The position numbers and the translations under genes were made by a program. From the NCBI GenBank assembly GCA_964036045.1, contig OZ038378.1:177940001-178004000 (forward strand): a stretch of 64,000 nucleotides of DNA, written 5' to 3'. The notes under the pieces were generated by a model. It saw only the letters and a list, made by a program, of their open reading frames with translations. It did no database searches and was not told where the DNA came from. Shown here piece by piece: positions 2,409 through 54,755 of the stretch. How positions within the stretch are numbered: the first letter of the stretch is position 1; the number at the start of each line of letters is the position of its first letter. This stretch comes from Eutreptiella sp. 'Long Island Sound 2002'. Taxonomy: Eukaryota > Protista > Euglenida.

Positions 2409-5400
2409 CTGAGGGAACGTAAAGGCATGCAGGGGCATGTAGGGGGGGGGGGGGGGCAGGGGAAGGGGCAGGTGGCGCCAGTAAGCCATAGTCCGCTTCA
2501 GCGGAGCCTGACGGCAAGACAGCGGGCATACGGAACCTTGGGCCCATCCTGAGAGACGAGGGCCAGCCCAGTACGCCGTGACGGCGAGAGGGCAGCTGCC
2601 AGCATGCAGGCACCATCCCCAGGCCTATGAAGAGGGGAAGGGATGCACCGGGGCCTATCTGCATCCAGCCTCAGCTGAGCACCTCCTTCCCCCCCATCTG
2701 GGGGCAACTGCAGGGGGATTGCAGGCGGATACACCGGGGGTTGTGGTACCAGATATGGATTTGGATTTGTATTTGGATTTGGTGGCTGATGCTGAGGCAT
2801 GGAGGAGGCAAGGGGGAGCACAATGGCGTCCCTGGCGACACTGCTCACTGGCTGGCTGACCATGCGTGTGGGGTTGGAAATCGCTGTCGGCGTTACCCCC
2901 TATCTCAATGCCCTGCCGCCATGTGGTCTGCCTCCCCCCTTCTGCAGCCCCTCGCAGCTGAGCACCCCCCCCCCCTCCCTTCAGGGGGCACCTGCAGGGA
3001 GGTGGCAGGCAGATACGCCTGGGCTGTGGTAACGGGTGGTGCAAAGGCAAGAGATGGGGGCAGGGGCAGGGGCAGGCCTCGAGCTCCCCCAAAAGAGGAT
3101 GCCAACCAGATACAGTTCTTATGCGGGGTCCGTGTGGTTGGTATGTTGGGTTGTGAGCTGCCGATCCACCCATGCCCCAAAGACACACTGGGAAACGGGC
3201 TGCTGGACCACTACGTATGCCTGGGTGTTGAAGTCACAGGCTTCAAGAACACAATCGGTCAATGTTCTGGTGGGGATGTCCACCCCCATCCGTGCCCCCA
3301 ACCGCCCCTTGTTGGGGCTTTGGCAAACGCCCGGCTCCAGCCTCGGCAGTGGAAAGCACGTGCAAGAGCTAGTTCTCCTACTGCTGAGGCACGAGACAGC
3401 ACCATTGGCACATTAAATCGACACTCAGGAAATATGCAGCCCTCAAACCCACGGTCTGTGTCATGACCACTTCTGTGGTCTGTACGGTATGCGGCTTAGA
3501 CACGACGCAGCTTGTGCGCCGCCCCGGAGATATATCAATGTCTAGTGAAGGCAATCTGTGCCGGTCGTGACGAGTTGTACCGTGGCTTGAAATGGCAGGA
3601 CACAAAGCAAACCAAAAACCCGGAATGAATGCAACTTGACAGTCTACGTGCAGCCGCTTGGGAATATTTGACAACAAACATGGCTCTTGATGGAGACACC
3701 AAAAAGACGTACTGAAAGAATCATGGGGCCAAACAAATACGGCCTCTTGGCGTAGCATCGACAAGCGTTTTTGGCCATGACCAGGTTGTACACCACCCCA
3801 ACCGCCCCCCCCCCCCCCCAACCCCACCCCACCAACGACCAATATGCAGGTCACATGCAATAATGGCACTGGACACCAGGTGTACTGCACGCTAGCCCAC
3901 CAGCCTTTATGGAACACCGGGGGGGTCAGGGCGGATATGTGGGATCGGTGGTGAAACACTGTTCAACAAATTTCCACCAAATCCAATGCACTTGTTGATC
4001 ACCTGGTCGCACTGATGCCCCCCCCTGAAAAAAAAAATCCTGTGCACTTCTTTGCACTGAATTCGGGTTCCGGGTCACGTCTGGTGCATCAGTAGGTATG
4101 TGCAATCTGGGGCATTGGGCCATCCTGGGTGAGCCAACAGTGGAGATACAGGGGCCCCGAACAGGGATGGGTTAGAGTTGGGGGGGGGGGGGTCCCCCCG
4201 ATAACGAAATGACGACGACGAAACTCGGGCGGCCAAGTTTGGCCAATTTTCACCATTTTGGACCCTCACAAAAAATGGATTTTTGCCCCCCCCACATACA
4301 TCTTTGTGTTCAGCACATTCCGCTGATCAATTTGATGGGCCTCATGACATTTCTTTGAAGAGTTTTCGGGATTTTGGACCACTTTCGGCCCCTTAGGAAA
4401 AATTCGGCGGCTTCGGCAAAAAAATTTACCCTTTACCACCCGAAGAGGGGCAAAGGAGTTTCGTAACCATTAATTCGTCATCTCAGGCCCCTCAGAGTCC
4501 CCCGCCCCCACCCCCGCCCCCACCTCAACCAAAATAATTCAGTCACTATTTTTTCCACACCTGGCCCCGAGTGCACAATGAAATAAAAACCTATCACTAG
4601 TTGAAATGGGGTCAATAGATGCACACGGGTGGTACACAAAGGGCTTCCACAGTGGGGCAGAGGCAGGCCACAGCAGCAGGTCTTAGGAAGATCAGGCGCA
4701 ATTTAAAGCAAGCAAACACACCTGCAGCAGCGGGCTGCCATGTTTGGTGCACAAAAATAGTCACGGCAAATATCGTCCATACTGCATTGCTCCATAAGAA
4801 CATAATTGCTGTCAAAATGGGGGTCCAGATGTCTGGCAAGGCACACCTTACAACTCTATGTCCCGCAAACAAAACACCAGACTTCCTCAGAGTCCAAGAT
4901 GGGCCATGACAAATTTCACTGAATCGCTAGACCTCAACCAGAATGTTGCATTAGATGCCTCCAAGCCTCGGGTCTGAGAGGAACTGCGAGCCCCTTGGTT
5001 TGGACACCAACCCCCCCCCCCCCCCCAAGTTTCTGACTGCCGGCCGGAGGGCCCTTGGAGCAGGGGGGCGGGGGGATGCGGTTGCCGGGATTGTCACAAA
5101 ATCCGGTCAATGCGGAAAAAATGCGGAAAATGTGGCAAAAAATGCAACAGAAAATGCGGTTCTGTTAGAATGATGTATGCCCCCCGAAACCCCTCTGTTT
5201 ATCAAGACGCATGTTCATCTGTTGACACCATCGCTCCATCAATGTGAAGACTATGGCCCTAGCTCAACATGCAAAGTGTGGTAGGGAAGTCTCACCCTTC
5301 TACTGTGATTCAGTGACATGTGGTCCCCACAATCACGGGGGCTGCTCCTAGCCAGGGTTTGACCCCAAGGGGTGCTCAAGCGTTTCAGGGGTTGTAGAGG

Positions 5401-6380
5401 GGGGGGTCCCCTTCATTGACCCAAACCTTGGGGGTTGGCGGGTCAGGCGGTCAGCCTCCGGGCTCCCCAGGGGGGGGGGGTACCCCAACATACATACCTC
5501 GAAATGATCCCCATGACGCGTTGATCATTTTGAACATACACAACTAGGGGAAAAAGTTTTCAAAAAAATTTGCCCATCAACCCAGGCTCCCATCAGCCAA
5601 GGTCTGACCCGGGGGTTGGGTCGGGGTCAAAATCCTTTTTTGCGTTTTTCATCCATTTTTCATTTCTCCACAAAATTCTGAGTATTTTGAGTATAGAAAC
5701 ATGGGGCCAAACAAACCCACAGTGCGCCCGCAGTGCAAAGTTTTTATGTCGGCAAATACTCATTTCTGTTACCCCATTTCCCTCACTTTGTTACCCACTA
5801 TACCGATAGTATGCCTGTATGCATTTTCTATAGGGATTTCAGACATAAGAGAATCAGATTGTTCTGTTGTGTTGCTGCATCCGCATGTGTTGCTTGATGT
5901 TTCCTCCCTCCATCTCCTCTGGGTGGTCTTTGATACATGTGCCCGCAGTGCAAAGTTTGTCCCTAAAACAAAATCTCCGGCTCCCACAAAACTCATTGTT
6001 CCTTACAACTAACTGGCTACAACACAATCCTTTAGTTGGAGTGCACAATGCAACTAGATTGTTTGCTCTTGAACATTACACTTAGGGACCTGCCTAGAAA
6101 ATGCGAAAAAATGCGAAAAATGCGAAAAAATGCGGACTACACCCCCCCTGCTTGGAAGGGGGGGGGGTCCCAGGAGGGGCCATTGGGGCTGTGAAGCAAC
6201 AAATACTTAGCTACCATATGACCCCTATGACATCGGCCATATGGTCATCGCTCATCGTTGTCCAAACCAGTGCTGAATGTTGCCTTGAGTTCCCCACACG
6301 GGCTATCGAACGTTCCGTAGGCTGGTTTGGGTAAAGAGTCTGTCTGCCTGTTAGCGGATCACATTCCAAAATCAATCGAG

Positions 6381-31155: not shown

Positions 31156-31549
31156 AGAAAATTGAAAAATTGAAAGAAATGCAACCTCTGCAATACATGC
31201 GCAATATGTACAGTTGCCGGGTCCGTATGGCACCCCATAGAGACCTTAACGATGGGACGCCGGGTCCACAAAACACATAGTACTCAGCGTGGCCACCAAT
31301 TAGTTGGGACTCGGCCAATATAACATAGTGTCACATGGAGTCATTGGCACTAGACACAAAATCAGGCCCAAGAAAAGAGTCCTGACAGGGCCATGGCAGG
31401 ATTGTGTATAAAGTCTGATGTCTGATGTGGCATGTTGTTGCTGCGGTGTATACAACAAGATGTGTGATATGTCTGATATCGATCTGATGCTTGGAGGAAG
31501 GGGGGAGGGGGGGGTTGGCGTCCAAATGGGTGTGCAAAAAGTTGATACC

Positions 31550-33110
31550 CCCACCCCATAAGTCCCCATAGGCCCCGATAGGGCCCCATAGGTCTCCATA
31601 GGTGCCAATAGGTCCCGAAAGGTCCCCATAGGCCCCCATAGGCCCCCATAGGTGCCCATAGGCCCCCGGAGGTCCCCATGGTTCCCCATAGGTGGCCAAA
31701 TGTCCCGGTACATGCCAATGAGTCCCCGGAGGCCCCCATCGGTCCCCATAGGTGCCCATAGGTGGCAATAGGTCCCCATAGGTCCCCATAGGCCCCCATA
31801 GGTCCCCACAAGCCCCCATAGGTCCCCATAGGCCGCCATAGGTCCCCATAGGTCCCCATAGGCCCCCATAAGTCCCCATAGGCCCCCACAGGTCCCCATA
31901 GGCCCCCAGAGGCCCCCATAGGCCCCGATAGGTCCCCATAGGTCCCCACAGGCCCCTAAAGGTCCCGATAGGTCCCCATAGGCCCCCATAGGCCCCCATA
32001 GGTCCCCATAGGTCCCCATAGGCCCCCATAGGTCCCCATAGGCCCCCATAGGTCCCCATAGGCCCCCATAGGTCCCCATTGGCCCCCATAGGTCCCCATA
32101 GGTCCCCACAGGCAGCCATCGGATCCGATAGGTCCCCATAGGTCCCCATAGGCCCCCATGGGTCCCCATAGGCCCCCATAGGTCCCCACAGGCCCCCATC
32201 ACCCCCGATAGGTCCCCATAGGCCCCCATAGGTCCCCATAGGTCTCCATAGGCCCCCATAGGTCCCCATAGGCCCCCATAGGTCCCCATAGTTCCCCATA
32301 GGTCCCCATAGGCCCCCGTAGGTCCCCATAGGCCCCCATAGGCCCCCATAGGTCCCCATAGGTCCCCATAGGCCCCCATTGGCCCCGATAGGTCCCCATA
32401 GGCCCCCATAGCTCCCCATACGTCCCCATAGGCCCCCATAGGTCCCCATAGGCCCCCATAAGTTCCTAGAGGTCCCCATTGGCCCCCATAGGCCCCCATT
32501 GGCCCCGATAGGTCCCCATAGGCCCCCATAGGTCCCCATAGGCCCCCATAGGTCCCCATTGGCCCCCATAAGTCCCCATAGGTCCCCACAGGCAGCCATC
32601 GGACCCGATAGGTCCCCATAGGTCCCCATAGGTCTCCATAGGCCCCCATAGGTCCACTTAGGCCCCCATAGTTCCCCATAGGCCCCTGTAGGTCCCCATA
32701 GGCCCCCATAGGCCCCCATAGGTCCCCATTGGCCCCCATTGGCCCCAATAGGCCCCCATAGGCCCCCATAGGCCCCTGTAGGTCCCCATAGGCCCCCATA
32801 GGTCCCCATAGGTCCCCATAGGTCCCCATAGGCCCCCATAGGTCCCCATGGGCCCCCATGGGTCCCCATAGGCCCCCATAGGTCCCCACAGGCCCCCATC
32901 AGCCCCGATAGGCCCCCATAGGCCCCCATAGGTCCCCATAGGTCCCCATAGGCCCCCATAGGTCCCGATAGGCCCCCATAGGCCCCACAGGCCCCCCTTG
33001 GCCCCGATAGGTCCCCATAGGCGCCCATAGGCCCCCATAGGTCCCAATAGGCCCCCATAGGTCCCCATAGGCCCCCATAGGCCCCCATTGGTTCCCATAG
33101 GTCCATCCTA
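31550..33110. repeat. 10-bp minisatellite (GGYCCCCATA)n, array 1
   Basis: Directly visible ggtccccata/ggcccccata units. Confidence 0.98.
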
Positions 33111-33202
33111 TCGCCATCGCTCCATGTTTCTATTTTTTGTTACCTTTGTGTACTTGTTGATTTCTCAATCCATTGGTGACACATTGCTTTTTGTTCGCAC
33201 GC

Positions 33203-33244
33203 TCAGAACTGATGAGGGGCAGCTCTGCCCGAAACATGCATTGA
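33203..33244 (+). ncRNA. Minimal hammerhead ribozyme motif (intact CUGAUGA core; cleavage triplet GCA)
   Basis: CTGATGA-g-GGGCAG-ct-CTGCCC-GAAAC-AT-GCA; identical copy at 35486-35527. Confidence 0.65.
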
Positions 33245-34076
33245 TTTCACATCTGCTTCTCTTTGCACGTGGAGCCCTCTTGCATTACACCGGTTGACCT
33301 TAAGGAGATCTTCGGTCACACCAACGGCAAATTACACAGCGTTCAAAATTTCATTTTGCCGTTTTGCAGTGACACGCCGATTCATGTGCGGCGGGGCTGG
33401 ATTTTCGGCGAATGCGTCCGATATTTAAGGCTCAATTCACATGCGGCGTTCTATTCTCTTTGCCTTCGCCGCCTTCGACTCGCTTTGGTCCGCTTAGGCT
33501 ACCCCTCTTCCTGGTTCTCCCCCTTTCCGGTCACGTGGTTTTCTCGACATTCGTACATGCACCGGAAGATGCGACTGCCGAGGGAAGTGGTACACGTTTT
33601 TCGGGTACGATACCATGGGGCCGTACGGATGAATTGGGGAAACCCGGTTAAATGTCTATTGTATAGTCTACGCCGCCTCATGCCGTCGCTCCGCTTGCTT
33701 TGCATCATGCAACCGTCTATGAATTTGCGCAGGCGCTTTCATGGCGCCAAGATTCATTCCCTTCTCGCTCTTGAGCGCCGTATATTACATCATGTGGACA
33801 CACTTGAGATGCCTACACAAGAACTACTCCTCAATTTGCACTAATGCTTTCTGACCTCCTGATGGGTGTGGATGGTGGGACCAAAATTTTCGAAAATTTC
33901 AGAATGTATTTGTTTCGATATATTTTGGATGAGGAGTCACACACGAGGACGGACGCGCGCCCACAGCGCGCTCCACATCGCCAGTCGCCATCGCTCCATG
34001 TTTCTATTTTTTGTTACCTTTGTGTACTTGTTGATTTCTCAATACATTGGTGACACATTGCTTTTTGTTCGCACGT

Positions 34077-34118
34077 TCAGAACTAATGAGGGGCAGCTCT
34101 GCCCGAAACATGTATTGA
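34077..34118 (+). ncRNA. Minimal hammerhead ribozyme motif (core CUAAUGA; intact palindromic ACAUGU and GUA triplet)
   Basis: CTAATGA-g-GGGCAG-ct-CTGCCC-GAAAC-AT-GTA; identical copy at 36360-36401. Confidence 0.65.
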
Positions 34119-34235
34119 TTTCACATCTTCTTCTCTTTGCACGTGGAGCCCTCTTGCATTACACCGGTTGACCTAGAGGAGACCTTGGGTCACACCAACG
34201 GCAAATTACACAGCGTTCAAAATTTCATTTTGCCG

Positions 34236-35393
34236 ATAGGTCCCCATAGGCCCCCATAGGCCCCCATAGGTCCTGATAGGCCCCCATAGGCCCCCATAGG
34301 CCCCCGTAGGCCCCCATAGGCCCCCATAGGTCCCCATAGGCCCCCATAGATCCCCATAGGTCCCCACAGGCCCCCATAGGTCCCCATACGTCCCCACAGG
34401 CCCCCATCGGCCGCGATAGGTCTCCATAGGCCCCCATAGGCCCCCATAGGTCCCAATAGGCCCCCATACGTACCCATAGGCCACCATAGGTCCCCATAGG
34501 TTCCCATAGGTCCCCATAGGCCCTCATAGGCCCCATGGGCCCCGATAGGTCCCCATAGGCCCCCATAGGTCCCCATTGGCCCCCATAGGTCCCCATGGGT
34601 CCCCACAGGCCCCCATCGGCCGCGATAGGTCCCCATAGGCCCCCATAGGTCCCCACAGGCACCCATAGGTCCCGACAGGTCCCCATAGGTCCGCATACCC
34701 ATAGGTTCCCATAGGTCCCCATAGGCCCCCATAGGCCCCGATAGGTCCCCATAGGCCCCCATAAGTTCCTAGAGGTCCCCAAAGCCCCCCATAGGTCCCT
34801 ACAGGTCCCCATATGTCCCCATAGGTCCCCATAGGCCCCCATAGGTCCCCATAGATCCCCATAGGTCCCCATAGGTCCCCACGGGTACCCATAGGTCCCG
34901 ATTGGCCCCCATAGGTCCCCGTAGGTCCCCATAGGTCCCCATAGGTCCCTACTGGCCCCCATAGGTCCCCGTAGGTTCCCACAGGTCCCCGAAGGCCCCC
35001 ATAGGTCCCCATAGGCCCCCATAGGTCCCCATTGGCCCCGATAGGCCCCCATAGGCCCCCATAGGCCCCCGTAGGTCCCCATAGGCCCCCATAGGTCCCC
35101 ATAGGTCCCCATAGGTCCCCATAGGCCCCCATAGGTCCCCATGGGCCCCCATGGGTCCCCATAGGCCCCCATAGGTCCCCACAGGCCCCCATCAGCCCCG
35201 ATAGGCCCCCATAGGTCCCCATAGGTCCCCATAGGCCCCCATAGGTCCCGATAGGCCCCCATAGGCCCCACAGGCCCCCCTTGGCCCCGATAGGTCCCCA
35301 TAGGCGCCCATAGGCCCCCATAGGTCCCAATAGGCCCCCATAGGTCCCCATAGGCCCCCATAGGCCCCCATTGGTTCCCATAGGTCCATCCTA
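34236..35393. repeat. 10-bp minisatellite (GGYCCCCATA)n, array 2
   Basis: Directly visible. Confidence 0.98.
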
Positions 35394-36518
35394 TCGCCAT
35401 CGCTCCATGTTTCTATTTTTTGTTACCTTTGTGTACTTGTTGATTTCTCAATCCATTGGTGACACATTGCTTTTTGTTCGCACGCTCAGAACTGATGAGG
35501 GGCAGCTCTGCCCGAAACATGCATTGATTTCACATCTGCTTCTCTTTGCACGTGGAGCCCTCTTGCATTACACCGGTTGACCTTAAGGAGATCTTCGGTC
35601 ACACCAACGGCAAATTACACAGCGTTCAAAATTTCATTTTGCCGTTTTGCAGTGACACGCCGATTCATGTGCGGCGGGGCTGGATTTTCGGCGAATGCGT
35701 CCGATATTTAAGGCTCAATTCACATGCGGCGTTCTATTCTCTTTGCCTTCGCCGCCTTCGACTCGCTTTGGTCCGCTTAGGCTACCCCTCTTCCTGGTTC
35801 TCCCCCTTTCCGGTCACGTGGTTTTCTCGACATTCGTACATGCACCGGAAGATGCGACTGCCGAGGGAAGTGGTACACGTTTTTCGGGTACGATACAATG
35901 GGGCCGTACGGATGAATTGGGGAAACCCGGTTAAATGTCTATTGTATAGTCTACGCCGCCTCATGCCGTCGCTCCGCTTGCTTTGCATCATGCAACCGTC
36001 TATGAATTTGCGCAGGCGCTTTCATGGCGCCAAGATTCGTTCCCTTCTCGCTCTTGAGCGCCGTATATTACATCATGTGGACACACTTGAGATGCCTACA
36101 CAAGAACTACTCCTCAATTTGCACTAATGCTTTCTGACCTCCTGATGGGTGTGGATGGTGGGACCAAAATTTTCGAAAATTTCAGAATGTATTTGTTTCG
36201 ATATATTTTGGATGAGGAGTCACACACGAGGACGGACGCGCGCCCACAGCGCGCTCCACATCGCCAGTCGCCATCGCTCCATGTTTCTATTTTTTGTTAC
36301 CTTTGTGTACTTGTTGATTTCTCAATACATTGGTGACACATTGCTTTTTGTTCGCACGTTCAGAACTAATGAGGGGCAGCTCTGCCCGAAACATGTATTG
36401 ATTTCACATCTTCTTCTCTTTGCACGTGGAGCCCTCTTGCATTACACCGGTTGACCTAGAGGAGACCTTGGGTCACACCAACGGCAAATTACACAGCGTT
36501 CAAAATTTCATTTTGCCG
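35394..36518 (+). mobile_element. Penelope-like element fragment, copy 2 (offset 2283 bp from copy 1; ORF 35546-36127)
   Basis: Near-identical to 33111-34235; two amino-acid differences in the 193-aa ORF (RYHG/RYNG, KIHS/KIRS). Confidence 0.85.
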
Positions 36519-37592
36519 ATAGGTCCCCATAGGCCCCCATAGGCCCCCATAGGTCCTGATAGGCCCCCATAGGCCCCCATAGGCCCCCGTAGGCCCCCAT
36601 AGGCCCCCATAGGTCCCCATAGGCCCCCATAGATCCCCATAGGTCCCCACAGGCCCCCATAGGTCCCCATACGTCCCCACAGGCCCCCGTGGGCCCCGAT
36701 AGGTCTCCATAGGCCCCCATAGGCCCCCATAGGTCCCAATAGGCCCCCATACGTACCCATAGGCCACCATAGGTCCCCATAGGTTCCCATAGGTCCCCAT
36801 AGGCCCTCATAGGCCCCATGGGCCCCGATAGGTCCCCATAGGCCCCCATAGGTCCCCATTGGCCCCCATAGGTCCCCATGGGTCCCCACAGGCCCCCATC
36901 GGCCGCGATAGGTCCCCATAGGCCCCCATAGGTCCCCACAGGCACCCATAGGTCCCGACAGGTCCCCATAGGTCCGCATACCCATAGGTTCCCATAGGTC
37001 CCCATAGGCCCCCATAGGCCCCGATAGGTCCCCATAGGCCCCCATAAGTTCCTAGAGGTCCCCAAAGCCCCCCATAGGTCCCTACAGGTCCCCATATGTC
37101 CCCATAGGTCCCCATAGGCCCCCATAGGTCCCCATAGATCCCCATAGGTCCCATAGGTCCCCACAGGTACCCATAGGTCCCGATTGGCCCCCATAGGTCC
37201 CCGTAGGTCCCCATAGGTCCCCATAGGTCCCTACTGGCCCCCATAGGTCCCCGTAGGTTCCCACAGGTCCCCGAAGGCCCCCATAGGTCCCCATAGGCCC
37301 CCATAGGTCCCCATAGGTCTCCATAGGCCCCCATAGGTCCCCATAGGTTCCCATAGGTCCCCAAAGGCCCCCATAGGTCCCCATAGGTGCCCATAGGCCC
37401 CCATAGGTCCCCATAGGTTCCCAGAGGTCCCCAAAGGCCCCCATAGGTCCCCATAGGTCCCCATAGGTTCCCATAGGTCCCCATAGGCCCGCATAGGTCC
37501 CCAAAGGCCCCCATACGTTTCTAGAGGTCCCCAAAGGTCCCCATAGGTCCCCACAGGTCCCCACAGGTCCCCATAGGCCCCCATAGGTCCAT
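36519..37592. repeat. 10-bp minisatellite (GGYCCCCATA)n, array 3
   Basis: Directly visible. Confidence 0.98.
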
Positions 37593-37649: not shown

Positions 37650-38200
37650 ACCATTTTTTGAGCTGCCAAGGCTGGAAAACTACATAAGCAGGTTGTGCCC
37701 CAGGCCCTTGGGGAGGCCCCCTCCCCCGACACCCAAATAGGGTGAAAAACACATAAAGAGGGGCTAAACCATGCTTTATATAGGATATTTGATCATTTTG
37801 GATTGGTAGTGTATCAAAAAGATCAGTTTCGGAAATTTCCATTTTTGAGCTGCCGAGGCTGGTAAACTACATAAGCAAGTTGTGCCCTAGACCCCTTGGG
37901 AGCCCCCCCTACCCCCCACACACCCAAATAGGGTGAAAAACACATAAAGAGGGGCTAAAACATGCTTTACATAGCATATTTGATCATTTTGGATGGTAAG
38001 AATATAAAGAAAATCAGTTTTGGAAATTTCCATTTTTGAGTTGCTGAGGCTTGTAAACTACATAAGCAGGTTTTTTGTTAGCCCCTTGGGAGCCCCCCCC
38101 CCAAAAAAAACCCAAATAGGGTGAAAAACACATAAAGAGGGGCTAAAACATGCTTTACATAGCATATTTCATCCTTGAGAGTGGTCACAATATTAAAAAA
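37650..38200. repeat. About three tandem copies of a ~190-bp unit
   Basis: catttttgag(c/t)tgc...cccaaatagggtgaaaaacacataaagaggggctaaa recurs at about 190-bp spacing. Confidence 0.85.
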
Positions 38201-38299
38201 AAAAATGCAAAATTTTCCATTTTTGACCTGTAGAGGGTGGAAAACTGCTTACGCGGTTTGTGAACACACCAAATGCCATTGAACCACCTACAAACAGCA

Positions 38300-39145: not shown

Positions 39146-41414
39146 ACGGTGGGTACAATCAGAGCGGGGGGGGAAATCAGAAATGGCCCACTTATGGGCA
39201 AAGTGGCTACGTCACAGCTGCCGTCTCGGGGATCCCCACCGCTGCAGAGCGGGGGGGGGGGGGGTCAAAAGTGGCCCACAAGTGGGCAAAGTGGCTACGT
39301 CATCCCTGCCGTCTCGGGGAGCCCCACTGCTTCAGAGCGGGGGGCAAAATCAGAAGTGGCCCACTTGTGGGCAAAGTGGCTACGTCACAGCTGCCGTCTC
39401 GGGGATCCCCACCGCTGCAGAGCGGGGGGGGGGGGGGGGGGATCAGAAGTGGCCCACAAGTGGGCAAAGTGGCTACATCACCCCTGCCGTCTCGGGGATC
39501 CCCACCGCTGCAACGCGGGGGGGGGAAATCAGAAGTGGCCCACTTGTGGGCAAAGTGGCTACGTCACCCCTGCCGTCTCGGGGATCCCCAGCGCTTCAGA
39601 GCGGGGGGGGAGGGGGAATCAGAAGTGGCCCACAAGTGGGCAAAGTGGCTACATCACCCCTGCCGTCTCGGGGATCCCCACCGCTGCAGAGCGGGGGGGG
39701 AAATCAGAAGTGGCCCACAAGTGGGCAAGAGGGCTACGTCACCCCTGCCGTCTCGGGGATCCCCACCGCTGCAGAGCGGGGGGGGAAATCAGAAGTGGCC
39801 CACAAGTGGGCAAGGTGGCCACGTCACCCGTGCCATCTCGGGGATCCCCAACGCTTCAGAGCGGGGGGGGGAAATCAGAAGTGGCCCACTTGTGGGCAAA
39901 GTGGCTACCTCACCCCTGCCGTCTCGGGGATCCCCACCGCTGCAGAGCGGGGGTGGGGGGGGATCAGAAGTGGCCCACAAGTGGGCAAAGTGGCTACGTC
40001 ACCGCTGCTGTCTCGGGGATCCCCACCGCTTCAGAGCGGGGGGCAAAATCAGAAGTGGCCCACAAGTGGGCAAAGTGGCTACCTCACCCCTGCCGTCTCG
40101 GGGATCCCCACCGCTGCAGAGCGGGGGTGGGGGGGGATCAGAAGTGGCCAACAAGTGGGCAAAGTGGCTACGTCACCGCTGCTGTCTCGGGGATCCCCAC
40201 CGCTTCAGAGCGGGGGGATAAAATCAGAAGTAGCCCACAAGTGGGCAAAGTGGCTATGTCACCCCCGCCGTCTCGGGGATCCCCACCGTTGCAGAGCGGG
40301 GGGGGAAATCAGAAGTGGCCCACAAGTGGGCAAAGTGGCTACGTCAGCCCTGCTGTCTCGGGGATCCCAACCGCTTCAGAGCGGGGGCCAAAATCAGAAG
40401 TGGCCCACAAGTGGAGAAAGTGGCTACGTCAACCCTGCCGTCTCGGGGATCCCCACCGCTGCACAGCGCGGGGGGAAATCAGAAATGGTCCACTTATGGG
40501 CAAAGCAGCTATGTCACCCCTGCCGTCTCGGGGATCCCCACCGCTGCAAAGCGGGGGGGGGGGGGGATCAAAAGTGGCCCACAAGTGGGCAAAGTGGCTA
40601 CGTCACCCTTGCCGTCTCGGGGATCCCCACCGCTTCAGAGCGGGGAGCAAAATCAGAAGTGGCCCACTTGTGGGCAAAGTGGCTACGTCACAGCTGCCGA
40701 CTCGGGGATCCCCACCGCTTCAGAGCGGGGGGGGGGGGGGGGATCAGAATTGGCCCACAAGTGGGCAATGTGGCTATGTCACCCCTGCCGTCTCGGGGAT
40801 CCCCACCGCTGCAGAGCGGGGGGCAAAATCAGAAGCGGCCCACAAGTGGGCAAAGTGGCTACGTCACCCCTGCCGTCTCCGGGATCCCAAGCGCTGCAGA
40901 GGAGGGGGGGGGGGGGATCAGAAGTGGCCCACAAGTGGGCAATGTGGCTACCTCACCCCTGCTATATCGGGGATCCCCACCGCTGCAGAGCGGGGGGGGA
41001 AATCAGAAGTGGCCCACAAGTGGGCAAAGTGGCTACCTCACCCGTGCCGTCTCGGGGATCCCCACCGCTGCAGAGCGGAGGGGGAAATCAGAAGTGGCCC
41101 ACAAGTGGGCAAAGTGGCTACGTCACCCCTGGCGTATCGGGGATCCCCACCGCTGCAGAGCGGGGGGCAAAGTCAGAAGAGGCCCACAAGTGGGCAAAGT
41201 GGCTACGTCACCCCTGCCGTCTCGGTGATCCCCACCGCTGCAAAGCGGGGGGGGGAAATCAGAAGTGGCCCACAAGTGGGCAAAGTGGCTACGTCACCCT
41301 TGCTGTATCGGGGATCCCCACCGCTGCAGAGCGGGGGGGGGGGGAATCACAAGTGGCCCACAAACGGGCAAAGTGGCTACGCCACCCCTGCCGTCTCGGG
41401 GATCCCCACCGCTT
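39146..41414 (+). repeat. Tandem array of ~80-83-bp palindrome-rich units, array A
   Basis: Unit AAATCAGAAGTGGCCCACAAGTGGGCAAAGTGGCTACGTCACCCCTGCCGTCTCGGGGATCCCCACCGCTGCAGAGCG(G)n. Confidence 0.97.
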
Positions 41415-44170: not shown

Positions 44171-45228
44171 CACGGTGGGTACAATCAGAGCGGGGGGATA
44201 AAATCAGAAGTGGCCCACGAGTGGGCAAAGTGGCTACCTCACCCCTGCTATATCGGGGATCCCCACCGCTAGAGAGGGGGGGGGATAAAATCAGAAGTGG
44301 CCCACAAGTGGGCAATGTGGCTACCTCACCCCTGCCGTATCGGGGATCCCCACCGCTGCAGAGCGGGGGCATAATTTCAGAAGTGACCCACAAGTGGGCA
44401 ATGTGGCTACCTCACCCCTGCCGTATCGGGGATCCCCACTGCTTCAGAGCGGGGGGATAAAATCAGAAGTGGCCGACGAGTGGGCAAAGTGGTTACCTCA
44501 CCCCTGCCGTATCAGGGATCCCCACCGCTTCAGAGCGGGGGGATAAAATCAGAAGTGGCCCACAAGTGGGCAATGTGGCTACCTAACCCCTGCCGTATCG
44601 GGGATCCCCACCGCTTCAGAGCGGGGGGATAAAATCAGAAGTGGCCCACAAGTGGGCAATGTGGCTACCTCACCCCTGCCGCATCGGGGATCCCCACCGC
44701 TTCAGAGCGGGGGGCAAAATCAGAAGTGGCCCACTTGTGGGCAATGTGGCTACCTCACCCCTGCCGTATCGGGGATCCCCACCGCTTCAGAGCGGGGGGC
44801 AAAATCAGAAGTGGCCCACAAGTGGGCAATGTGGCTACGTCACCCCTGCCGTATCGGGGATCCCCACTGCTTCAGAGCGGGGGGCAAAGTCAGAAGTGGC
44901 CCACTTGTGGGCAAAGTGGCTACCTCACCCCTGCCGTATCGGGGATCCCCACCGCTTCAGAGCGGGGGGATAAAATCAGAAGTGGCCCACGAGTGGGCAA
45001 AGTGGCTACCTCACCCCTGCCGTATCGGGGATCCCCACCGCTTCAGAGCGGGGGGATAAAATCAGAAGTGGCCCACAAGTGGGCAATGTGGCTACCTCAC
45101 CCCTGGCGTATCGGGGATCCCCACCGCTGCAGAGCGGGGGGCAAAATCAGAAGTGGCCCACTTGTGGGCAATGTGGCTACCTCACCCCTGCCGTATCGGG
45201 GATCCCCACCGCTTCAGAGCGGGGGGCA
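44171..45228 (+). repeat. Tandem array of the ~80-bp palindrome-rich unit, array B, inside the hAT element
   Basis: Same unit and same leader CACGGTGGGTACAATCAGAGCGGGGG as array A. Confidence 0.97.
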
Positions 45229-53310: not shown

Positions 53311-54230
53311 CTGAAGGCATGGAAAGTGTTGTCGCACTGAGGGGCTGGAAAAGGGGGCGGGGGGGGGGGGGCGTCCATCGACTTCAGTCAGATGCAGGGC
53401 GCTCCCTAACTCAAAAGGGCGGTCATGCAGCCCTTACTATTGGAAGTGGCGGAAGAGGAGGACGCATAACTCCCCGAGGCGTCTGGATGCTTGCTGTTAG
53501 AATATGTATGAGCTCTGGGGGATGACAGCAAAGTATTGGCTACCTATGCCGAAACGTGTCGAGTACGGGAATCGAACGCCGGACCTTTAAATTGGCGCTC
53601 TTCAATGAAATGAAAAAAAAAAAAAGGGAGCGCCCCGGTCACTCCGGATGCAGTGGGGATACAGGAAGACAATCCCACCGCACCCCAAACCACTGTGAGG
53701 ACGTCCTGCTGCGCTGCATGACGGTGTGCGCGTGGGTTTGGGAGTGGGTACGGGCGTGGCGTGGCGTTTTGCCTTGAACTGTGTCCGCGCCCTATCATCC
53801 CACGTACAGTGCGCTGGCACAACGTAGAGGTAGCCGCCCCCTTCGGCGAGGCAGTGCACCGCAGGATCCCCGCTGCACACTGCCCCCTGCAGTGCAGCAG
53901 TACACTGAAGGATCCTCACAGCCCACTGCCCCTGGGGGTGCCATGAGCGGTCCCACTGCCCACTGTCCCCTGCAGTGTGGCAATGCACTGAGGAAACCCC
54001 CTTGCTGGCTGCGCCCTGCAGTGAGGCAGTGAGGCAGTGAGGCACAGACACCAGGACTTGAAATTTAGCTGAGGGTTTGGTATCAGGGCCCACCCGCCTG
54101 GCTTTTCCCGTGGTCACGGCATCCGGGCCATTGCCTTTTGGTAACAGCGCCTTCGGCACACCACACCACAGCAGAACCCACCCCACCTCACCACGCCCCA
54201 TCACACCCCACCCCACCACCACACCACACC

Positions 54231-54711
54231 ACACAACACAGCACAACACAACACAACACGACACAACACAACACAACACAACACAACACAACACAACACA
54301 ACACAACACAACACAACACAGCACAACACAACACAACACAACACAACACAACACAACACAACACAACACAACACAACACAACACAACACAACACAACACA
54401 ACACGACACAACACAGCACAGCACAGCACAGCACAGCACAGCACAGCACAGCACAGCACAGCACAGCACAGCACAGCACAGCACAGCACAGCACAGCACG
54501 ACACGACACGACACGACACGACACGACACGACACGACACGACACGACACGACACGACACGACACGACACGACACAGCACAGCACAGCACAGCACAGCACA
54601 GCACAGCACAGCACAGCACAGCACAGCACAGCACAGCACAGCACAGCACAACACAACACAACACAACACAACACAACACAGCACAACACAACACAACACA
54701 ACACAACACAA
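54231..54711. repeat. Compound pentanucleotide microsatellite CACAA/CACAG/CACGA/CACAG/CACAA in an intron
   Basis: Directly visible. Confidence 0.98.
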
Positions 54712-54755
54712 GACATAACACTCGCAATGCTCAGCATCTTTCAATTCATGTTTAC

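Follow-up and report, generated by a model that had tools for sequence, protein, structure and literature searches.

Paired hammerhead motifs in a satellite-embedded remnant of a Penelope-like element from Eutreptiella

We analysed a 64-kb stretch of the genome of the euglenid Eutreptiella sp. 'Long Island Sound 2002' (GenBank assembly GCA_964036045.1, contig OZ038378.1, positions 177,940,001 to 178,004,000 of the forward strand; hereafter the window), in which a unit of the form X-Y-X' is enclosed by satellite DNA, X and X' being direct repeats that each carry a hammerhead ribozyme motif. A preliminary description had proposed that this unit is a permuted 874-nt mini-element, possibly an RNA replicon intermediate between Penelope-like elements (PLEs) and retrozymes. 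The proposal is not supported, as the X-Y joint occurs at one locus only, its two copies there are products of a local duplication and each hammerhead is damaged. The unit is an ordinary transposon remnant of a known kind and not a new self-cleaving RNA replicon: very probably it represents one decayed, 5'-truncated, partial-tandem PLE insertion in a 10-bp satellite that was later duplicated locally.

Composition of the unit and its joint

The Penelope origin suggested in the preliminary description is supported: the unit consists of the 3' end of a PLE, namely a pseudo-long terminal repeat (pLTR) with a minimal hammerhead and the C-terminal tail of a reverse transcriptase (RT). Y and X' together correspond to the final 874 bp of an element of ∼3.5 kb with two open reading frames (ORFs), and X to the final 251 bp of its 353-bp pLTR (Table 1). 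In searches with the unit, for which, as for all genome searches reported here, the window's own 2.28-Gb assembly was used, unit positions 255-1130 aligned with the 3' ends of several ∼3.5-kb copies and positions 779-1130 with both ends, i.e. both pLTRs, of those elements. X and X' are 251 nt long, 96% identical and spaced 874 nt from start to start, and the locus thus described holds 1.29 units of the 874-bp period. The X-Y-X' geometry had been described exactly for both units. The 193-codon open frame that had been taken for an RT C-terminus does exist (33263-33844), but only its last 160-161 codons (33356/33362-33841) are RT-derived: tblastn aligned window positions 33356-33838 with residues 553-713 of an intact 714-residue ORF2 (copy L037, see below) at 75% identity. 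The first ∼32 codons are a chance read-through into the non-coding pLTR.

We searched the genome for the X-Y joint with a 120-nt probe centred on 33361/33362 and scored all 32 candidates. No candidate other than the two copies in the window crosses the joint; all others stop at it from either side. A joint confined to this locus had been named in the preliminary description itself as an outcome counting against a mini-element. At the joint, the pLTR end (...TTTTGCC) has a CC(G) microhomology with the ORF (...ATACCG followed by TTTTGCAG). X and X' end at the identical nucleotide, and the G that follows X' equals the G that follows X at the joint, although this is a match of 1 nt that is found in another copy too. 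Another arrangement of this kind, with a pLTR tail, a shortened ORF tail and a pLTR, was found on contig 12 (locus L010, G000:C12:63482303-63485961, minus strand, approximately 63483803-63484740). Here, pLTR positions 70-349 are joined directly to an ORF tail that starts at unit position 468 and is followed by a pLTR, with a period of 659. Since L010 has an equal architecture with other breakpoints, it speaks for a recurrent insertion by-product and not for a defined mini-element. On the sequence comparison, the recurrence of a pLTR tail, a truncated 3' end and a pLTR with variable truncation points appears to be just such a by-product.

The satellite arrays, (ATAGGTCCCC)n, enclose two non-satellite blocks of 1131 bp (33105-34235 and 35388-36518). 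The second block repeats the layout of the first at 35394-35644 and 36268-36518, i.e. 2283 bp further on, and the two differ at 2 of 1131 positions. Self-comparison of the window at an offset of 2283 bp gave ∼100% identity from ∼32900 to ∼34880, so that the duplicated segment takes in satellite on both sides as well, ∼200 bp upstream and ∼650 bp downstream. Because the flanking satellite was duplicated at the same offset, the two units are one insertion that was copied later rather than independent events.

Table 1. Features of the unit and of the surrounding satellite (window positions)
Feature	Position	Strand	Basis or detail
10-bp satellite (CCCCATAGGT/ATAGGTCCCC)n, upstream host array	31554..33104	+	Tandem Repeats Finder (TRF)
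X: 5'-truncated pLTR copy (pLTR positions 103-353) with canonical pLTR 3' end ...TTTTGCC(G)	33111..33361	+	Repeat comparison
X minimal hammerhead	33209..33240	+	CUGAUGA 33209-33215, extra G 33216, helix II 33217-33230, GAAA 33231-33234
Y coding part: last 160 codons and stop of the RT ORF (thumb/C-terminal region, without catalytic motifs)	33362..33844	+	Homology, structural model
Spacer, 38 bp	33845..33882	+	
Complete 353-bp 3' pLTR; its last 251 bp are X' (33985-34235)	33883..34235	+	
X' minimal hammerhead	34083..34114	+	Core CUAAUGA, G5>A at 34085
10-bp satellite between both units	34236..35387	+	TRF
Duplicate of the entire unit, differing at 2 nt	35388..36518	+	2283-bp tandem duplication including flanking satellite
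10-bp satellite, downstream array	36519..37590	+	TRF

Long open frames occur on the minus strand of the window, among others at 31331-33106 and 34225-35400; they reach 591 residues and consist of GPMGAYGGLWGPMG... repeats. We rejected them as genes, as they are translation artefacts of the 10-bp satellite. Other repeats in the window are a 191-bp repeat of 2.9 copies directly after the 10-bp satellite (37655-38202), tandem arrays of an 85/86-bp repeat with G-runs (39160-41413, 26 copies; 44185-45226, 12 copies) and a (CACAA)n array (54217-54715).

Hammerhead motifs at the locus and across the family

Hammerhead core strings lie on the plus strand at 33209, 34083, 35492 and 36366, one in each repeat. 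The claim of a hammerhead motif per repeat therefore stands as far as the core layout is concerned, and the motif is a genuine one of the family; the claim needs qualifying in that X' reads CTAATGA instead of CTGATGA and X has a C at position 16.1. In X, the conserved core is kept (33209-33215 and 33231-33233), as in most family copies, and the nucleotide at 16.1 (33239) is C, not U, which changes the cleavage-site triplet from GUA to GCA; the predicted site at 33240/33241 would thus be disabled. In X', helix III (ACAUGU) and the GUA site (cleavage at 34114/34115) are intact, and the core carries the G5>A change. Both lesions, U16.1>C in X and G5>A in X', are private and were seen in no other family copy (23 pLTR copies). 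X and X' differ at 9 of 251 sites, two of which fall among the ∼14 critical positions, where ∼0.5 would be expected. The idea that the lesions are complementary was rejected, as two critical differences are compatible with neutral decay. Release of an 874-nt RNA by two cuts is unlikely from these sequences, since it needs cleavage at both sites and each copy is damaged; at most, one composite site, made up of the core of X and the site of X', would remain canonical. The hammerhead at this locus is probably a relic.

At the family level, the motif derived from the 23 pLTR copies reads CUGAUGA - G - GGGCA-loop-UGCCC - GAAA - C AUG U - A/UU, the stroke marking the cleavage site. Eight element lineages of the same RT superfamily, one of them (L035) from another organism, keep the order CUGAYGA - extra nucleotide - helix II - GAAA - palindrome - H. 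Among these eight lineages, helix II has entirely different sequences yet is paired over 5-8 bp, and the 15.1-16.1 segment is palindromic throughout (ACAUGU, AUGCAU, ACCAUGGU and others). The starts of helix I co-vary (UUC/GAA, UCCA/UGGA, CUCU/AGAG, CCC/GGG and CAC/GUG): the first two pairs are formed in cis in 8 of 8 lineages, compared with 1.15 of 2 on average in a trans control with partners swapped between lineages. The cleavage-site triplet in the family is GUA or GUC.

The hammerhead was recognised by the published criteria for minimal hammerheads (PMC4209133) and by covariation across element families. The Rfam hammerhead models, whose use had been recommended for this locus, gave no match in the whole window at the gathering score, none in 33000-36600 even at E ≤ 10 and none, at E ≤ 10, in an undamaged family copy; this minimal form lies outside the range of the curated models. 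In PLEs, minimal hammerheads are characterised by an extra unpaired nucleotide between A9 and G10.1, a G10.1-C11.1 pair, a loopless palindromic helix III and a short helix I; they have been proposed to act as dimers and are reported to cleave poorly in vitro (PMC4209133). The compensatory changes in eight lineages, together with the features that Cervera and de la Pena (2014) describe, argue that the pLTR motif is, as judged by sequence, a genuine PLE-type minimal hammerhead at the family level, and by analogy it would be expected to act as a dimer. Monomer and dimer folds of the two locus motifs calculated with ViennaRNA were uninformative: the minimum-energy structures are not hammerheads, and the helix II strands pair between molecules.

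One further locus, of another lineage, has a different hammerhead arrangement. In L039 (G000:C4:41166500-41174000), hammerhead pairs 586 bp apart lie on each side of the ORFs on the plus strand (1164/1750 and 4667/5253), and two more hammerheads, 349 bp apart, lie on the minus strand. The pLTR regions of L039 thus contain sub-repeats in tandem, each with a hammerhead, and come nearer to a true retrozyme-like dimer than does the unit in the window.

The parent element family

The search for a full-length parent PLE was successful in that full-length relatives with both pLTRs were found. In copy L031 (contig 4), 350-bp direct repeats (2436-2785 and 5998-6347) enclose three plus-strand ORFs (2807-5959), which correspond to two ORFs in intact relatives. 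Direct pLTRs of 350 bp lie on either side of the ORFs in L031, L032, L033 and L034, and an inverted pLTR or pLTR fragment abuts the 5' pLTR in L031 and L033. A full head-to-tail tandem with a period of ∼3598 bp is present in L036 (G000:C18:27795000-27802500). Several lineages have intact copies, with an ORF1 of ∼347 residues that is coiled-coil and SR-rich and an RT ORF2 of 714-720 residues; in the intact copy L037 (G000:C7:69253500-69261500), ORF1 spans 1858-2901 and ORF2 2952-5096. The ORF2 stop lies 38 nt before the pLTR. In sequence terms, this architecture fits PLEs, with its pLTRs, inverted pLTR pieces, full tandems and one hammerhead per pLTR.

That the parent enzyme is a reverse transcriptase is confirmed by three lines of comparison, with distant homologues, with a profile and by fold. 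For the last ORF of L031 (489 residues), 1846 homologues were found at E ≤ 0.001. RVT_1 is matched by 5 of 16 aligned homologues, and the profile of the aligned homologues matches solved reverse transcriptases around the catalytic motifs. In a Foldseek search with the AlphaFold model of the RT ORF (predicted local distance difference test score, 82), telomerase RTs accounted for 7 of the 10 best matches, at a template-modelling score of only ∼0.43 and with other RTs close behind. The genome contains at least 2794 candidate RT matches. L036 and L038 are further members of this two-ORF PLE-like superfamily, copies of which are interstitial on many contigs. The superfamily may be an endonuclease-less PLE lineage.

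A minus-strand frame that looked GIY-YIG-like by eye was rejected, as Pfam finds nothing in it and the parent ORF lies on the plus strand. The genome-wide PF01541 matches could not serve as a control for PLE endonucleases, those inspected being small SLX1/URI-like GIY-YIG proteins with no RT nearby. Independently of the PLE family, we observed a multi-copy open frame of ∼190-215 residues with an SLX1/URI-type GIY-YIG domain (PF01541, ∼50 bits) at G000:C8:24506567-24506788 and, with equal scores, in at least eight more places (see also L052 and L055). This frame is unrelated to the PLE RT, has no RT nearby and may belong to another mobile element.

Origin of the unit and comparison with known systems

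The structure of the unit can be accounted for by one old PLE insertion. Reverse transcription would have begun at the canonical 3' terminus of the pLTR and run over 874 nt, comprising the 353-bp pLTR, the 38-bp spacer and the last 160 codons and stop of the RT ORF. The enzyme would then have jumped, at a microhomology of 2-3 nt, onto a second template at its 3' end and extended the cDNA by 251 nt more of pLTR sequence; attachment of this cDNA to the target would have given rise to X-Y-X'. The variable truncation points suggest template jumping of this type, in which the enzyme leaves a truncated template and resumes at the 3' end of a further RNA. Subsequently, the insertion would have decayed, with X and X' diverging at 9 of 251 positions and each hammerhead acquiring one lesion. 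Much later, an unequal exchange in the satellite would have duplicated the 2283-bp block together with the unit.

Several points weigh against this reading. We infer the order of events in the template switch, and an internal deletion of a full-length copy gives the identical sequence. The closest other copy in the genome is only 93% identical to the unit, which implies that the source copy is absent from the assembly. Pfam has no family that matches the RT itself, either in the ORFs of the window or in those of the parent elements. The telomerase-like affinity of the RT, as suggested by the structural model, is tentative. Finally, no GIY-YIG endonuclease was matched in any family ORF (Pfam, E ≤ 0.1-1, without a PLE-endonuclease positive control), and in this the family departs from canonical endonuclease-positive PLEs.

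The internal deletion would require that an element of full length (pLTR-ORF1-ORF2-pLTR), its upstream pLTR shortened at the 5' end, inserted here and later lost ∼2.7 kb between the end of the 5' pLTR and ORF2 by a microhomology-mediated event. Full-length copies with both pLTRs do occur, and the CC(G) microhomology at the joint would suit such an event. However, the left breakpoint lies exactly at the last nucleotides of the pLTR, where X' meets the target, and the independent locus on contig 12 joins the exact pLTR end to another ORF position. Repeated breaks at the 3' terminus of the element point to template jumping to an RNA 3' end and not to random deletion, and we consider the deletion unlikely. 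The assembly itself could also be at fault, with either the second unit or the 2283-bp duplication in its entirety resulting from mis-assembly of the satellite, as the satellite context and the near-identity of the copies might suggest. This is the least probable of the explanations weighed here: the copies differ at two sites in the unit and at more in the satellite, short contigs of independent sequencing runs match parts of the unit without differences, and an artefact would change only the copy number and not the nature of the unit.

The proposal of a proto-retrozyme, in which a non-autonomous mini-element of 874 nt with a hammerhead at either boundary would be transcribed, cleave itself into monomers or circles and be moved by the PLE RT, draws on the pLTRs of PLEs as the proposed source of animal retrozymes and on the range of vertebrate non-LTR retrozyme consensus lengths (51-972 bp), within which 874 bp falls (10.64898/2026.07.22.740005). 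The G after X', as after X, would be expected from a multimeric template, but it is a single nucleotide that another copy has too. The element is confined to a single locus with 1.29 units, the same architecture occurs elsewhere with other breakpoints, and both the X cleavage site (GCA) and the X' core (G5>A) are damaged. None of the sequencing runs recorded as RNA matched the unit, a result that neither supports nor excludes expression. A proto-retrozyme is accordingly very improbable. Hardly more credible is the bolder combination in which the X-Y unit of 874 nt would be a non-autonomous derivative newly arisen from a PLE and copied from RNA of the unit in multimeric or circular form, the G after X' being the first base of the next Y, and in which, separately, the parent would be an undescribed, abundant, endonuclease-less, two-ORF, interstitial PLE lineage. 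If it were true, the derivative would represent the onset of a transition from PLE 3' end to retrozyme.

Three runs whose kind is unrecorded, with two species labels among them, contain short contigs that match parts of the unit, and a fourth run, guessed to be RNA, has none. The contigs leave the unit at 33359/33360 into parental ORF or 5'-untranslated sequence; among the contig pieces listed, none bridges the X-Y joint. Run X4, with a different species label (B), contains a 226-nt contig identical to the Y part at 33404-33629, where other genome copies differ from Y by 7-10%. To judge by this match, a close relative may possess the locus too, or the lineage from which it came.

For annotation, the partial-tandem PLE insertion is a routine case, a decayed PLE fragment in a satellite. 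It also provides a clean example of how PLE insertion yields a hammerhead - spacer - hammerhead structure with variable breakpoints that can be mistaken for a retrozyme. Because insertion produces such look-alikes, screens for retrozymes based on paired hammerheads should require recurrent junctions. The better lead is the parent superfamily, with its thousands of RT matches, intact two-ORF copies, richly covarying hammerheads and no endonuclease seen.

PLEs are known for a telomerase-like RT, pLTRs that stem from an upstream partial copy and a minimal hammerhead in each pLTR (PMC4209133; PMC8557442; PMC11167929); the pLTRs arise from partial tandems, and an inverted truncated copy often adjoins the upstream pLTR (PMC8557442). 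The elements described here share the pLTRs, the adjoining inverted truncated copy and the minimal hammerhead per pLTR with these partial tandems, whereas both members of the window unit are extreme 5' truncations (251 and 874 nt). Compared with canonical Penelope, Poseidon and Neptune elements, the parent family has two ORFs, a coiled-coil/SR-rich ORF1 and the RT ORF2, with no GIY-YIG domain detected, and it resembles endonuclease-minus PLEs. Like the endonuclease-deficient Athena and Coprina elements and the Neptune-like MjPLE01, it has no detected endonuclease domain, a coiled-coil ORF ahead of the RT ORF and a hammerhead close to its 3' end; unlike them, it shows no reverse-complement telomeric repeats at the 3' end, and its copies are interstitial on many contigs.

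The hammerheads agree with the PLE minimal form (Cervera and de la Pena, 2014) in the CUGAUGA and GAAA boxes, the unpaired nucleotide between A9 and G10.1, the G10.1-C11.1 pair, a helix II of at least 5 bp, the loopless palindromic ACAUGU at 15.1-16.1, a dimer design, and a helix I of 2-4 bp. They differ in that each window copy has one private lesion and no Rfam model scores the window motif. That animal retrozymes derive from PLE pLTRs has already been argued (PMC7229834; 10.64898/2026.07.22.740005). Animal non-LTR retrozymes (Cervera and de la Pena, 2020; Li, Clavereau and Pollet, 2026) have in common with the window unit the head-to-tail repeats, the type I hammerhead bounds and the origin from PLE pLTRs. 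They are amplified families of non-coding monomers, usually of 170-400 nt and often in arrays, that give linear and circular RNA. A retrozyme is recognised by an amplified monomer family, at independent loci or in arrays, and by a functional hammerhead at both monomer boundaries; the window unit, in contrast, has a joint unique to one locus, 1.29 units, an RT coding remnant and ribozymes with one lesion in each copy.

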